From Mytilus trossulus (lineage: Eukaryota), in the NCBI RefSeq assembly GCF_036588685.1, contig NC_086379.1, positions 62,062,001 through 62,126,000 of the forward strand: a stretch of 64,000 nt of DNA, read 5' to 3'. Positions 24,741-61,570 of this stretch are shown here, piece after piece. The translations under genes were made by a program, and so were the position numbers. Under the pieces are notes generated by a model. It did not search any database. It worked only from the letters and a program-made list of their open reading frames with translations, and was not told the DNA's origin. Position 1 is the first letter of the stretch, and each line of letters begins with the position of its first letter.

Positions 24741-27225
24741 ATGAACATGAAACTGATCTTACTGGTATTTACTGTGAATATTTCTTATTGTTTAGTAACC
24801 TGCGAACAAATCACATTAAGAACAAAACTTGGGAATATAACTGGTGTAGAAAGAAATATATCAGATAACAAACTTTTGGAATTCCGCAAAATTCCATATG
24901 CCAAAGCTCCAGTGGGTGATTTGCGATTTGAAAAACCAGTGCCTTATGGGTCGTGGACAAGCCCATTAGACGCAACCACATATAGCCCATCTTGTTATCA
25001 GGAATTACCGGAAAACGTGAAGAATGTTTTGGCAAACAAAATCGTAACTGAAGATTGTTTATTCCTCAACATTTATGTTCCCTTTACAGTTACTCCCAAG
25101 ACCCCCAAATCTGTGATGGTGTGGATTCATGGAGGAGGATACTCTACTGGACAGGCGGCTCTATATGACCCTGGACGGTTTGCTACAACTGGAGATGTAA
25201 TTGTTGTTACTATAAACTATCGCCTAAACGTGTTTGGATTTTTAAGTACTACCGATTTGAATGGGAACTACGGAATATGGGATCAGATATTAGCAATTCA
25301 GTGGGTTAAAAACAATATTGATTCCTTTGGTGGTAATAGCGATTCTATTACAATTTTTGGCGAGTCCGCAGGAGCATTCAGTGTTGGACTCTTATCGATC
25401 GCTCCAAGAAATGACGGATTATTTAAAAGAGCCATAATGCAAAGTGGTGTAGCCATCTCCCCCTACTCTATGGGCAAAAAAGCCAACTCTTCCCTAGTTT
25501 CGCAATTTTTAAATTGTACACATAATGATGAGAACTTAGTCAGCTGTTTGAAGAAGAAAACTTCGCCTGAACTGTATGAAGGATTGCTGAAGTCTAAATT
25601 TGCACAGCAAGCTCTTTTAGAAATCCAATTTGCTCCCGTTGTCGACGGAGAACTGTTTCTTGACAACCCACTTAAGCTTTTAAATGATGTTGATTCTCCA
25701 GCATCTCAGTTTTATAGGTCATTAGATGTCATAATAGGAACAACAAGTGGCGAGTCATCCCTTTTTGTTTTTACGCTTCAAAAACTTCAGATACTATTTC
25801 AATTCAATGTATCAGACGGAATTCCGAAACGTGTTCTTACAAACTTTCTTGCACCACAAATCGCTAATGCATACTTCAATGGCAACCCTAGAGTCATCGC
25901 TGCTATTATTAAGCAATATGGTCAATCAAATGATAGAATGAGACAAACCTTTGATATTCTTGATCTGTATACAGATTTGCTGTTTTTTGTACCGGCTGTA
26001 CATTCTTTGCTGTTACATGATCCAAACAATGCAAAGAAAAGTCGCCAGTTTCAGTATGTTTTCCATGGCCTACCATCGTTTCCTTTGTTTGGACCACTCC
26101 CACCTTGGTTCAACAGGTCTGAACATGCAGCTGACACTACGTATCAATTTGGCAATAGCTTTGTGTCTCTCCCAACTCTTGACACTGACCTATCAAACAA
26201 ATTCATTAAATACTGGGCAAACTTTGCAAAAACTGGGTAAGTTCTTTATGTTGAAGTTTGTATAAATTGTGCATGTTCATGTACAGATTTATGATTAAGT
26301 ATATATTTATTACGCATGTACATTTACAGTACATTTAGTAATGGCTCTTTAAATTCAACATGAAATAATATTGAAAAATATGTCCATATCAATTATCATC
26401 CTATATAAATATGCTATGGGATAATTTCCAACGGGAAAACTCTTCACAAGAGACCAAATGACAAAGAAATTAACATGCAACAAAATGTCACTATACGACC
26501 TTCAACAATGATCAAAGCACAAAATATCACATAGTTAAGTTTGCATATGTTGTCTACTTTATTTTATACAGAACAAGTTTTTTTTTATTATATCATATTT
26601 TGATATCAAATGTATATGAGGAATTGTATATTGTATTTAGATATTACCAACATGTCTGTCACTCGTTAAAACAACATACCAATAGTGTTAATACTAGTCA
26701 TCATTCCACTTAAATTTGTAAGAAATTTGGAAATACAGTCCAAAAGCTTTAGCTATTGGCAAGGTGTTTAAAATCAGACTCAGAAGAGATAAAAGAAGGA
26801 ACAAAAACTTAGAGACTGACAGTATTTGACAAAACCCCAAAAACCTCGAAATCTGTAATCATTTTTCCACTTATATTTCATGAATAAATATATACAAACA
26901 AGAATAATCATTACAAGCAGGTAACAAAAACATGTTGTGCCCTTAATCGGTTGAAGTTTTGATTATTCTTTTTTATTTCAGAGATGTAAATGACGCAGAC
27001 CTGCCAATGTGGAAAGAGCATGATGCCGTTCAAGCACATTACATTAATTTAGATGTCAATATTACTACAGGTCAGCATTTGTTCCAGGATCGTGTTCAAT
27101 TTTGGTTAAATGATATCCAGCAATTTCAGAACCCAACATCGAGTGGAACGTGTCTAAGGCAAATTACCATTGGATGGCTTATATTTGTTTCATTCATGTT
27201 TAGTCCTGTATTTTTCTACCATTAA
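24741..27225 (+). CDS. Type-B carboxylesterase (cholinesterase-like alpha/beta hydrolase), 579 aa, signal peptide and probable GPI anchor
   Basis: Exons 24741-26236 and 26982-27225 (phase 2, GT-AG). Motifs: EDCLFLNI, WIHGGG oxyanion loop, NYRL, NYGIWDQ, FGESAG nucleophile elbow, GTTSGE acid, SEHAAD His, YWANFAKTG; hydrophobic N- and C-termini. A tttcag acceptor just before the ATG implies a 5'UTR intron. Confidence 0.95.
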
Positions 27226-32937: not shown

Positions 32938-48365
<15,428 letters not shown>

Positions 48366-48437
48366 TCTAGTTCTCCGGATGTAAAGAAAAGTATTAAACA
48401 GGATATATTATCTTACAGTGAAATACATACTATTAAA

Positions 48438-48469
<32 letters not shown>

Positions 48470-48471
<2 letters not shown>

Positions 48472-49504
48472 TAAGTACGTCTGAGTCAGTGACAACCCTA
48501 CAACAGATGTATCCATCGGATCGCCATCAATGATGGTGATACATGGCTGTGTACATAATGTATATACAACTCGTCTAAACATCAACCCAACAATGTTAGA
48601 TCTGTAAATTTGCTTTCGCAAATTTTTGGTTCTTCCCTCGCCGGGATTCGAACCCATGCTTCTGTGATATCGTGACACCAAATCGCCTGCACTGCAGCCG
48701 TCCCGCTAGACCACACGACCACCTGGGCTCTCAAAAAAAGAGCTTTCGGTGGCCATATGTTACCTTTCCACGTCAGTTTTAATCTAGCGGCGTACTACAG
48801 TACATGATATATAAGGCATGAAGATGTTATTGTTACAGATCAGCTAAATTATCTATAGTAAAGGATCCTACAAATTAATGTAAGATACAGTCACAGAAAA
48901 TAACGTCGTGTGGTCTAGCGGGACGGCTGCAGTGCAGGCGATTTGGTGTCACGATATCACAGAAGCATGGGTTCGAATCCCGGCGAGGGAAGAACCAAAA
49001 ATTTGCGAAAGCAAATTTACAGATCTAACATTGTTGGGTTGATGTTTAGACGAGTTGTATATACATTATGTACACAGCCATGTATCACCATCATTGATGG
49101 CGATCCGATGGATACATCTGTTGTAGGGTTGTCACTGACTCAGACGTACTTATGAATATAATTATTTTCTGTGACTGTATCTTACATTAATTTGTAGGAT
49201 CCTTTACTATAGATAATTTAGCTGATCTGTAACAATAACATCTTCATGCCTTATATATCATGTACTGTAGTACGCCGCTAGATTAAAACTGACGTGGAAA
49301 GGTAACATATGGCCACCGAAAGCTCTTTTTTTGAGAGCCCAGGTGGTCGTGTGGTCTAGCGGGACGGCTGCAGTGCAGGCGATTTGGTGTCACGATATCA
49401 CAGAAGCATGGGTTCGAATCCCGGCGAGGGAAGAACCAAAAATTTGCGAAAGCAAATTTACAGATCTAACATTGTTGGGTTGATGTTTAGACGAGTTGTA
49501 TATA
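48470..49504. mobile_element. Composite insertion of a 441-bp tRNA-headed (Pol III) unit in (TA)n: one minus copy plus 1.36 permuted plus copies
   Basis: 48470-48719 = reverse complement of 48905-49154; 48720-48903 = reverse complement of 49162-49345; 48905-49063 is repeated at 49346-49504 (period 441). A box TGGTCGTGTGG at 49344-49354, B box GGTTCGAATCC at 49411-49421; (AT)n on both sides. Confidence 0.88.
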
Positions 49505-49851
49505 TATGCATATATATATAAGCTCATCCTTTATATTAAACACTGCCTCCAATCATATTTAGACCAATAGTTTTCTACGTCTTTATTTTATTATGATCCA
49601 AAAATTCACGTGTTTAAAGAAAGGTAAGAAGTGAAATTTTAGCTTCCTGTTATATAATTGTTGGTTTTTATTTTTGTTGTGAAATTAAACTACATGTATT
49701 TTAACAATGCGCTTTACCCATATTAAATGTTGTTAATATTTTTCTTATTTTACCTGATTCAAAAATTGATATTTTACTTGTATAATTACGTTATCACTGA
49801 AAACTAGTTCTATGAAAAGGATAATGTTATGTGTGTGACATGCATTTAAGA

Positions 49852-50002
49852 ATTGAATTCTTCTTTTTGTAAATTAATTGTTGTGTAAAAGCGTTGAACG
49901 AAGTACATTTTGTATGAAGCGCTTATGTGCTCTATTCTAAAATTGTGCGCACCGTCAACGCTTTTATAACCCTATATATAATTACTTAAAATAGTATTCA
50001 AT
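49852..50002. mobile_element. Degenerate palindromic MITE
   Basis: Inverted arms attgaat...taaaagcgttga / tcaacgctttta...attcaat. Confidence 0.55.
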
Positions 50003-58700: not shown

Positions 58701-61570
58701 GTCTTTTGTGGATAGTTGTCCCATTGGCAATCATACCACATCTTCTTTTTTATATTGACATAGCCATGGCCAAAAAAGAAAATGACAAACAGTACACTAA
58801 ACACAGCACAGAAAATCATAGACTGGGCTTCATATTTGACACCCGGTAAACCAACTCGTGATGACGTCCGTAAAATTTACGAAGGGATCATTTCCAACTT
58901 CATCACTCGGGACTCGTGGTTTAATAGCTTCAATAAAGTGTAATTATAAGAATTGAATGCTTCGTTTTGTAATTTTGTAGTGCTGTAAAATGGTTGATCG
59001 CACATTTTTGTCGAAAGCGTGTCATACAAAATGTGTTTCGGTCAACGCTTTTACTCCCCGATAAAAAACCAGAAAGAAGCATTAAACTCTTAAATGAAAT
59101 ATGAATTGCATGCATGGTAAATAGTAGATTAAATGCTTTGAAGATTTTTAGAGATACTACAAATTCATGAAGTGGAAAAAAGTATAAAGAAAAAGATCGA
59201 ATGAGGTTAAAACAAATAATTCAGACGGTCTATATTAAGCGCAGTGCTTTACTTTTTTCAGGTATCGGTAAGACTTTGGCTTACGGACCGGGTGTGGTAA
59301 TCGTAGGAATGTATTTTAGTCGAAGACGTGGTATAGCAGTTGGTCTGGGTACCTCCGGTGTGGCACTAGGTGCCTTTGCTGTGCCAACTTTGGTTGAGTT
59401 CTCATTTTCAGAATACGGATATTTTGGAGCTTTTATAATCATGACAGGAATTGCTTTACAGTTGGTTGTGTGTGGATTTCTATTGCGCCCATTATCATTA
59501 CACAAACAGATTACAGAATATGATAGAAGGTTTGTCTATTATATTTATACCATATATAAAAAGAACTTCAACCAAGTCACGTGTTAATGTTAAAGAATAA
59601 CTTACGTATCAGTGGCGGATCCAGAACTTTTCCTAAGGGGGGGGGGGGGGGGGGGGGGCGCTGACTGGCCTAAGGGGGGCCCTCTCCAGGTATGCTTCAG
59701 TGATTCCTTATATAATCAACCAAATTTTTCCCACGAAATCAGTCAAAATGTCGAAATCGGGAAAAAAGACACAAATAGTCAAAACTAACGACAAAAGTTA
59801 ACCAAGTTAAATGTATAATTGATTATATGTAACATATTTTATATTGGTTATATTTATTGATTGGTGTTTGCTTTACAAACAAAAAAAGCAAAAAAGGCTA
59901 TATCGCTGCGAGAGCTTATTCTATTCAAAGTTATATTAGTTATAACGTCTGCACGTGCGATTGAAATGAAATCGGGTAGTTAAACAGAAAAAACATCAAT
60001 ATTTTATTTTTATTTTGTAGAAAACTACAAATATTGAAGTGGAATGATGATAATAAGAGTCTCGTATGTTTGGCTAAATCACAAGAACATGCTAAAACTT
60101 TACCAACGGATACAGTGCACAGACCTAGTAAAATAATTGTTAAGGATAGTAACCGTTTTGCTAATGCCAGTCTGAAAGTCGATGAGAAAAATAAAGAAAC
60201 AAAACAAAATGGAAAGTTTTGTGACTTTTCTCTCTTAAGAAATAATCGTTTCAGTAGTTTATGCGCAGCAGTTGTGCTTTTTAACGTTTCTTACCAGTCC
60301 AGCATGATATTTCTTCCCGCGCTTTCAGTAAAATTGGGAATCGATGAGTTTGAATCGTTTCCGGTTGTAGTTGTCGGTATTTGTGACGGCCTTGGGAGAA
60401 TCATATCAGGATTTCTGTTTGACCGCAAGTGCATAAAGCCTATAAGATGCTATATTTACAATGCAGCGCTATTCTGTTTGGGAGTTACGACAATGTTTAT
60501 CCCGTTGGTTAGAAATACCACACAATTCGGTATAGTATGTGCTATACTTGGATTGTTCCTTGGAAACGGTGTATCTCAGCAGTCAGTTGTTATTGTTGAT
60601 ATCCTAGGAGAAGAAAACTTATCTTGTGGTTTTGGAATACTAATACTGTTTCAAGGAATAGGAACATTTATAGGTCCTCCTTTGTCTGGTACGTATATAC
60701 ATAGCAAGGTTATAGGTAAAATAAATGGCTTCAAATAAACAGCTGATTCCAAGGAAACAACCAAATTCAAATATCAAAGTAATGATGGATACAACATAAT
60801 AACTATATTCAAATCTCCTTCAATAACAACTAGTATAACAACAACAACAATAACAATACACCTATCACCCTCAATAACAAGACCAGCGACACCCACATTA
60901 ATGTAACAATTATATGCACACGAAACAGTCGTTCCATCTTTAAAGACTGAAGCTAGAAAATATAAAACATTGAGAGCGTAAATATCCAAAAAGGACTTGG
61001 AATGAAAAAAAACACATCCATATTGATGACTTTCGTCTGTGGGAGTTGCACTCTTTGGTTTAAGTTTAATTACTAGAAATGGAATACTAGTAATTATACT
61101 ACAACTTTTTATTTAATTACAGTATTGTGTACTATTAACAAATGTTCTTTGGAGTAATTGTTAAAATCATCTGTCCATTTTCTTCATCCATCTAAATGTA
61201 TGTCCCTTTTGTTAAGTTATCCTCATCCTGTATTTTAATTTAATTATTTTCAAATTTCAGTTGCTAGTGTTTCTTAACGTGGCGCTTTAGATTTAGACTT
61301 TTCTTTTCAATTATTGACTGTGGTCAAATGTATTTGAATAAAACTGAATATTCCATACGTTACCATGAAACCTAAACTACACTCAACTTTCTCTTTGTAG
61401 GTTTACTAAAGGATATAAATGGATCGTACGATTATGCCTTTTATTTAGGTGTTGTATGTGCTATCCTTGGTGCAGCTATTTTTATGGGAGCCAATATTGT
61501 GCATTATAAATTGGAGAAAAATATGTACAGTATAGAATCAAAAGACGCTTTTAATTGTCATAAATTATAG
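55704..61570 (+). CDS. Monocarboxylate transporter (SLC16 family, MFS), 527 aa, 6 coding exons
   Basis: Exons 55704-55920, 56164-56280, 56746-56889, 59262-59529, 60021-60688, 61401-61570 (1584 nt). SLC16 motifs: DGGWGWFIV, AWVTS, GPVASALCNRF, SYGVIGGIG, YFSRRRGIAVG, LLRP, GRIISG, GPPLSGLLKDINGSY. Intron 2 has a GC donor. Confidence 0.93.
57431..57578. mobile_element. Palindromic MITE in SLC16 intron 3
   Basis: ~60-bp arms aaatagttctttcgtgtcatgctctat...ttttaacatg..taggcattat / ataatgccta..catgttaaaa...atagagcatgacatgatagaattattt. Confidence 0.75.
57678..57968. mobile_element. HINE/Helentron-like element (second family)
   Basis: Starts aacaag; (GACG/GAAC/GACA)n at 57882-57926; terminal palindrome atgccc-atcaat-ggggcat. 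Confidence 0.65.
58250..58755 (+). mobile_element. SINE-like interspersed repeat
   Basis: Shares a central motif with 22270-22605 and body and tail with 54250-54562; the tail ttggca(a/c)tcataccacatcttct also occurs as fragments at ~32270-32310 (+) and ~33525-33570 (-). Confidence 0.65.
59610..59738. mobile_element. Truncated CAGTGGCGGAT MITE with poly-G tract
   Basis: Colinear with 54009-54122; lacks the right TIR. Confidence 0.7.

Follow-up and report, generated by a model that had tools for sequence, protein, structure and literature searches.

A high-copy 441-bp unit set head-to-head into (TA)n in Mytilus trossulus, probably by an enzyme of Penelope-like elements

The window, a stretch of 64,000 nucleotides from Mytilus trossulus (C7:62062001-62126000), carries an insertion of ~1.07 kb that is embedded in (TA)n and holds one 441-bp unit in both orientations. 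The locus raises the question of which process sets such a unit, inverted and in partial tandem at once, into a microsatellite. Among retrotransposons, Penelope-like elements (PLEs) form the least understood class; only recently have their tandem and inverted products been tied to internal initiation on both strands. The locus probably arose in a single recent insertion, made in trans by a PLE RT/GIY-YIG enzyme, of a non-autonomous retroelement that is non-coding and present in many copies.

Sequence reading and a repeat finder, applied to 48200-49800, placed the unit once in inverted orientation at 48470-48903 (minus strand) and 1.36-1.37 times in direct orientation at 48905-49504 (plus strand). 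Position 1 of the unit is window position 48905. The inverted arm of ~1.0 unit runs from unit 258 to 441 and on from 1 to ~250-256, with its 3′ end at site B, outward to the left. The direct arm runs from unit 1 to 441 and again from 1 to 162, with its 3′ end at site A, outward to the right. Both meet head-to-head (5′-to-5′) at a single filler base (48904), which is unmatched in the unit mapping. The repeat finder reported a direct repeat with a period of 441 nt (48905-49066 versus 49346-49507, 99% identity) and two pairs of inverted arms, 48558-48903/49162-49507 (346 nt, 100% identity) and 48459-48719/48905-49165 (261 nt, 99% identity). Mismatches between the arms, which are 99-100% identical, are confined to the zones merging into the flanking (AT)n. 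One inverted and 1.36 direct copies of practically identical sequence had been described in an earlier note made by eye, and this description holds. Because the arms differ in phase, starting and ending at different points of the unit, the structure at 48470-49504 is not a simple foldback, as the same note maintained.

The target lies on both sides of the insertion. By direct reading, the left part is (AT)14 at 48441-48468 with ATGCA just before it (48437-48441), and the right part is TATGCA(TA)5 at 49505-49519. The outer ends merge into (AT)n and ATGCA(TA)n flanks both sides, as previously noted; the TSD proposed from these flanks is possible, with limits that cannot be set. An internal copy of the site A module (..TTTAGACGAG..GTATATA) is located at 49030-49066 (plus strand), and its terminal copy at 49471-49504 forms the right end. 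The site B module (..CTCAGACGTAC..TTATG) has an internal copy at 49117-49160 (plus strand) and a terminal copy on the minus arm, 48470-48510, which forms the left end. Two other very-high-copy short repeats flank the insertion at 49824-49971 and 48048-48121; the summed contig depth over them is ~1e4 to 4e5, compared with ~18 for unique sequence.

The inverted joint at 48903-48905 might be a chimera, of the assembly or of a read, that masks a simple tandem insertion. None of the listed reads or contigs covers the central joint, and PLE-type structures are known to trouble assemblies (PMC8557442). Against a chimera, the arms are unlike in phase and length, and the right junction is confirmed by a contig of short-read run X1 (independent or source run), which spans 49482-49872 with 0 differences. 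The (-,+) topology with outward A/B ends recurs as head-to-head pairs at loci L040, L046 and L062 and on contig C1, where 13679986/13681423, 28335831/28337175 and 2825617/2837010 are among many coordinate pairs. Within the initial 45 Mb of C1, at least 10 (-,+) pairs of ends are separated by ≤3.5 kb, against ~0.6 expected for independently scattered ends. Since the topology recurs at many loci, a chimera is highly improbable here.

The unit is non-coding, as had been claimed: every frame contains 7-9 stops per unit. Its G+C content is 41%. An A-box-like motif at unit 7-17 (48911-48921 and 49352-49362, plus strand; 48703-48713, minus strand) was called by direct reading against the type-2 Pol III consensus. 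A perfect B-box motif was read directly at unit 66-76 (48970-48980 and 49411-49421, plus strand; 48644-48654, minus strand). A candidate Pol III terminator, the T7 run at unit 422-428 (49326-49332, plus strand; mirror A7 at 48733-48739), is a hot spot of array-specific variants and sits ~14 nt upstream of the next unit head. A T4 run is located at unit 261-264. ARAGORN made no tRNA call for the unit head, and Rfam returned no tRNA at E≤10, either in 1.4 kb or in 196 nt alone. Of the tRNA-promoter head described earlier, the A and B boxes are thus present, while a tRNA is called by neither program; the "tRNA-like" head therefore means promoter boxes, not a tRNA fold. Transcription of the unit by Pol III from this head is suggested by the A and B boxes and the T runs.

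The absence of a recognisable ribozyme, also stated before, agrees with the Rfam search, which found no hammerhead, twister or other ribozyme in the 1.4 kb or the 196 nt (E≤10), or in related loci and families. A CUGA..GAAA ribozyme look-alike upstream of the T7 run was dropped on inspection by eye, as core positions are missing. The sense RNA of the unit is more stable than shuffled sequences (-135 kcal/mol, z = -4.3). Unit 365-390 (window 49269-49294) contains an 8-9-nt inverted copy (CCGCTAGA) of the A-box region at unit 1-17 (window 48905-48921). In the predicted fold, this CCGCTAGA copy pairs with the head and would close most of the unit into one domain.

A search of the whole 1.30-Gb assembly with the unit gave 183 scored matches with 96-100% identity from 353 candidates. 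For array mapping, 38 further loci were taken with their flanks, and removal of two duplicated loci left 60 arrays of 0.34 to 16.75 units. The tabulation of phases, orientation and flanks across the genome, a check proposed in the earlier note, revealed fixed internal 3′ ends, scattered 5′ ends and (TA)n targets. The 3′ end was at unit 150-165 (site A) in 33 of 59 arrays and at unit 245-262 (site B) in 12 (chi-square p ~4e-39, 37 loci). The 5′ ends were scattered across the whole unit (p = 0.04), with a mild excess at the TATATAT inside the unit (341-350) and another immediately before the head. Of 58 5′ ends, 17 fall close to the predicted transcription start (unit 399-441 and 1-7), where ~6.6 are expected; this enrichment is broad and does not decide the matter. 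(TA)n is the target in almost all cases. At loci whose target deviates from pure TA, TSDs of 5-12 bp occur (L053, 12 bp; L032, 6-12 bp; L055, 5-9 bp; L035, 5-8 bp). The element joins the TSD directly at these four loci, hence (TA)n is the target and not the tail of the element. The structure at the locus and the ends across the family are read directly from the assembly. Neither fixed-end monomers starting at the tRNA head nor plain arrays without (TA)n preference, which the earlier note had named as contrary outcomes, are what the family shows.

These ends also bear on transport by a DNA transposon, i.e. a tandem repeat carried by a Helitron, a Helentron or a similar element. Helentrons are known to carry dispersed short satellite-like arrays in oysters (PMC7492417). 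Helitrons and Helentrons have fixed termini and no TSD. The 441-bp family has no fixed 5′ end, no terminal inverted repeats and a variable 5′ truncation, and TSDs are present. The end statistics contradict this explanation, which retains next to no probability, and cut-and-paste elements are ruled out by the free 5′ ends and the TSDs as well.

Genome-wide junctions were counted with exact patterns; reversed-pattern controls were all 0. Site A (unit ~162) is joined to (TA)n 2583 times, and in 4139 cases the sequence continues past it into the following part of the unit. Site B (unit ~256) is joined to (TA)n 534 times. The 441-bp family comprises thousands of insertions in the genome and is not a one-off. 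As the unit contains no longer perfect TA run than site C (unit 348-356), this site serves as the key control. It was counted 3 times as a 3′ end and 25 times as a 5′ joint. As site C is almost never a 3′ end, the 3′ ends are set by a signal specific to A and B, not by TA microhomology with the target. As a genomic proxy, the 3′-end counts of the three sites correspond to internal RT starts at two defined sites, independent of homology to the target.

A different enzyme could leave part of this pattern. A SINE-type element may be moved by a (TA)n-specific LINE, with priming on UAUA of a read-through RNA and inversions from L1-style twin priming. The fixed 3′ ends, 5′ truncation, TSDs and ~20% inverted insertions observed in the family are also features of twin-primed LINE insertions. 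Tandem and palindromic tRNA-SINE structures have been reported in bivalves (PMC11481361). With priming by microhomology, the contrast between 2583 3′ ends at site A and 3 at site C stays unexplained. Two internal start sites combined with multi-unit arrays are the published PLE signature, and no LINE with a matching tail was encountered on incidental inspection. A LINE as the responsible element is considered unlikely.

Spread at the DNA level was weighed with the same counts. A satellite-like repeat could pass through extrachromosomal circles or replication/repair and re-integrate by microhomology at fragile (TA)n. Such a route accommodates the tandem arrays, the TA-rich sequence at both junctions and the palindromes common at (TA)n. 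It predicts symmetric breakpoints, whereas the observed 3′ ends are fixed and the 5′ ends free, and site C is found at 25 5′ joints against 3 3′ ends. The TSDs of 5-12 bp and the thousands of dispersed short arrays speak against it as well, so that this route is very unlikely. Nor does the 441-bp family behave like satellite DNA in general, whose long arrays occupy few loci and lack a TSD, a target and defined ends.

Sites A and B derive from one module by duplication and divergence. The motif TYAGAC-N5-7-TA is common to both sites, to both ends used by a family with a 574-bp period, and to a third element beside L038. The 574-bp-period family is a second non-coding tandem family, present at L067:2488-3487 and in the flanks of L031, L036, L047-L049, L056, L061, L064 and L066. 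It ends at (TA)n after ..TTTAGACTCGT or ..TTTAGACCCTT, with ~1400 such junctions genome-wide, and its arrays often stand tail-to-tail with 441-bp arrays. The third repeat lies in the right flank of L038 (L038:3663-3712, minus strand) and ends with ..TTTTCAGACGTG, a TYAGAC-type terminal motif, directly at (TA)n.

Inverted pairs inform on the template. Private variants are common to both arms in L040 (T362C), in L046 (+T421 and G145T) and in L062, where four are shared (T38A, A59T, T191C and a T-run deletion). Each head-to-head structure is therefore one event from one template. Tail-to-tail neighbours (L038, L052, L068) carry different variants and are thus attributed to repeated insertion into one and the same microsatellite. 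Joints vary: a 1-nt filler in the window and in L040, a 9-nt overlap at a palindrome in L046, and no filler in L062.

Units differ from one another by a median of 0 within an array and of 5 between arrays. In young arrays, variation is concentrated at unit 421-434, which comprises the T7 run and the bases that lead up to the head. Variants in this segment are array-specific and common to all units of an array, and to both arms in L046 and L062. Two older arrays (L044, L067) have a two-unit higher-order period. Homogeneity within arrays, array-specific boundary variants and the two-unit period argue against serial jumps between separate monomer RNAs. The circular or multimeric RNA proposed earlier implied a template longer than one unit, and such a template is supported by the identity of units within arrays and the array-specific T7/head variants. 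Two forms are suggested, and both fit: a homogeneous read-through multimer, or a rolling-circle copy of a monomeric or dimeric circle closed at the T-run/head boundary. The unit, with the boundary between successive units, is represented in contigs from RNA libraries, which DNA carry-over of so abundant a repeat could also produce. One such contig of 471 nt equals 441 nt plus a 30-nt self-overlap; it is compatible with a circle and is not proof of one.

PLE insertions are strongly 5′-truncated, form partial tandems and often have an inverted 5′-truncated copy at the 5′ end (PMC8557442, Craig et al.). Naiads lack hammerheads, prefer (TA)n and form tandem and inverted insertions, and non-autonomous Chlamys elements yield multicopy head-to-tail insertions (PMC8557442). 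A purified PLE protein initiated reverse transcription within the RNA, at two sites without homology to the DNA that was cut (PMC11167929, Frangieh et al.). The same protein, from the lizard Poseidon element and not from a mussel, cuts AT-rich DNA and extends both strands, and a multi-copy RNA template was proposed (PMC11167929). Each of these published properties has a counterpart in the 441-bp family. The PLE-like footprint suspected at the single locus recurs across the family: 3′ ends are fixed at internal sites and 5′ ends scattered, the targets are (TA)n, and partial tandems stand beside an inverted 5′-truncated copy (cf. PMC8557442, PMC11167929). Features of a PLE-dependent element, namely 5′-truncated copies with partial tandems and an adjacent inverted 5′-truncated copy, and a microsatellite or AT-rich target, were both found. 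We infer a PLE as the enzyme class.

A mechanism may be proposed on this basis. A PLE enzyme would cut the (TA)n microsatellite. Reverse transcription would then start inside an RNA longer than one unit, multimeric or circular, at site A (~162) or site B (~256), each 5-7 nt downstream of a TYAGAC motif, and synthesis would stop or switch at a variable 5′ point. At the present locus, both strands of the break may have been extended from the same template, the left inverted arm from site B and the right direct arm from site A. The two cDNAs would subsequently have been joined 5′-to-5′ with the one filler base.

Naiad-type and other EN+ PLEs (PMC8557442; PMC11167929) resemble the 441-bp element: they target (TA)n or AT-rich DNA, are 5′-truncated, form partial tandems next to an inverted 5′-truncated copy, and start RT at two internal sites. 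The segment between sites A and B behaves like the optional "tail" of PLEs. Unlike these PLEs, the 441-bp element has no ORF, its "tail" measures 94 nt versus 30-40 bp in PLEs, and its arrays exceed 16 units. The family looks like a ribozyme-free, tRNA-promoter-headed hitch-hiker of PLEs.

Potential donors of the enzyme are abundant. Genome scans for GIY-YIG and Naiad RT located many PLEs: Naiad RT candidates that carry an N-terminal GIY-YIG number >12000, and copies of several C-terminal-EN PLE families end at (TA)n. PLE copies abut 441-bp arrays at common TA runs in L034, L069 and L070. In L069 and L070, the PLE 3′ end is followed by the TA run and a 441-bp copy of like orientation. The 16.75-unit array of L034 meets a 5′-truncated C-terminal-EN PLE head-to-head, and a neighbouring partial 441-bp copy is joined head-to-head to a Naiad fragment. 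This adjacency is suggestive; it may reflect the common (TA)n target only, because two elements with one target would adjoin anyway. An autonomous GIY-YIG/RT element sharing a terminal segment, anticipated in the first reading of the locus, was not found in the compared parts of Naiads (short of the 3′ tails) and of two C-terminal-EN PLEs: blastn and a motif scan gave no significant similarity and no TYAGAC..TATA. A match of 11/12 between the PLE 3′ end of L070 and the unit was rejected as too short. The C-terminal Naiad fragments in L034 and L053 are degenerate and have no clean 3′ end.

Three PLE families with a C-terminal GIY-YIG were observed, at L069:529-1950 together with L076, at L070:1041-2862 (minus strand) and at L034:8642-9066. 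In two of them, the 3′ end passes into (TA)n (..TTAATTTTTAA and ..GGCAATTTA). Compared with one another and with the Naiad enzyme, the endonucleases of the three families show 30-39% identity. Naiads have their GIY-YIG at the N terminus, and all copies in L072-L080 start at one point, ~330 nt upstream of the endonuclease match. Judged from match coordinates, full Naiad copies elsewhere in the genome form tandems with a period of ~4277 bp. At L034:560-830, short palindromic repeats of the CATATGTTT type are densely arrayed and interrupt a Naiad fragment.

Animal non-LTR retrozymes and Chlamys MRC1, of which the former reach ~5000 hammerhead copies in mussels, are likewise short AT-rich non-coding units of a few hundred bp, dispersed as head-to-tail multimers (PMC7229834; bioRxiv 10.64898/2026.07.22.740005; PMC8557442). 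They share TSDs >4 bp and are also thought to be copied by PLE enzymes. Retrozymes carry a self-cleaving hammerhead in every unit; the 441-bp unit, in contrast, has no hammerhead or other known ribozyme and possesses an A/B-box head and a T7 run. It also differs from retrozymes and MRC1 in having no similarity to a pLTR or 3′ end in the compared PLE parts. Sm-alpha/Sj-alpha of schistosomes, as cited in PMC2770079, have a tRNA-derived Pol III-type head and occur in thousands of copies, both tandem or satellite-like and dispersed. By the same account, Sm-alpha has an active hammerhead and tRNA-Gln pseudogene calls, whereas the mussel unit has neither. Bivalve tRNA-derived SINEs (PMC11481361) are similar in their A and B boxes, TSDs and occasional arrays of 4-15 units and palindromes. 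They are monomers starting at the head and ending in a LINE-derived tail, with arrays formed by recombination; the 441-bp family has free 5′ ends and 3′ ends inside the repeating unit. Its array ends do not conform to tRNA-derived SINEs, i.e. monomers extending from the head to a LINE-type tail or poly(A).

No description of the 441-bp family or of a tRNA-headed PLE-dependent SINE was found in the literature searched. Nor did it yield an account of a family that lacks a ribozyme, has a head of tRNA boxes and combines a PLE-type footprint with two defined start sites; non-autonomous PLE parasites and tRNA-headed tandem elements with hammerheads are already known. The idea of a PLE parasite is thereby extended from hammerhead retrozymes to a ribozyme-free element that is perhaps driven by Pol III. 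A more specific scheme is offered tentatively and has the odds against it: Pol III might transcribe from the tRNA-like head to the T7 run, yielding an RNA of exactly one unit, which would be circularised without a ribozyme and copied by a PLE enzyme in a rolling circle, with TYAGAC-N5-7-TA as the start signal in cis. If true, the family would be the first "SINE of Penelope-like elements" to be defined, and would provide a natural map of the signal for PLE initiation. Young, short, non-coding insertions, present by the thousand in a chromosome-level genome, record start sites, a better TA match that was ignored, and the joining of arms, and the cis requirements of a PLE enzyme thereby become directly testable. 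Such structures affect repeat annotation and assembly quality of bivalve genomes.

Further features were observed in the window. Two type-I hammerhead matches, at 42975-43018 (plus strand, 33.0 bits) and 37784-37827 (minus strand, 32.1 bits), score just below the Rfam threshold of 34. Their sites are two copies of an unrelated ~200-bp repeat, and no tRNA-like head adjoins them. Long open frames match the carboxylesterase family at 24741-26240 (plus strand, E = 6e-120) and the Major Facilitator Superfamily at 60034-60738 (plus strand, E = 4e-12). Both frames are probably host gene exons or intronless copies.
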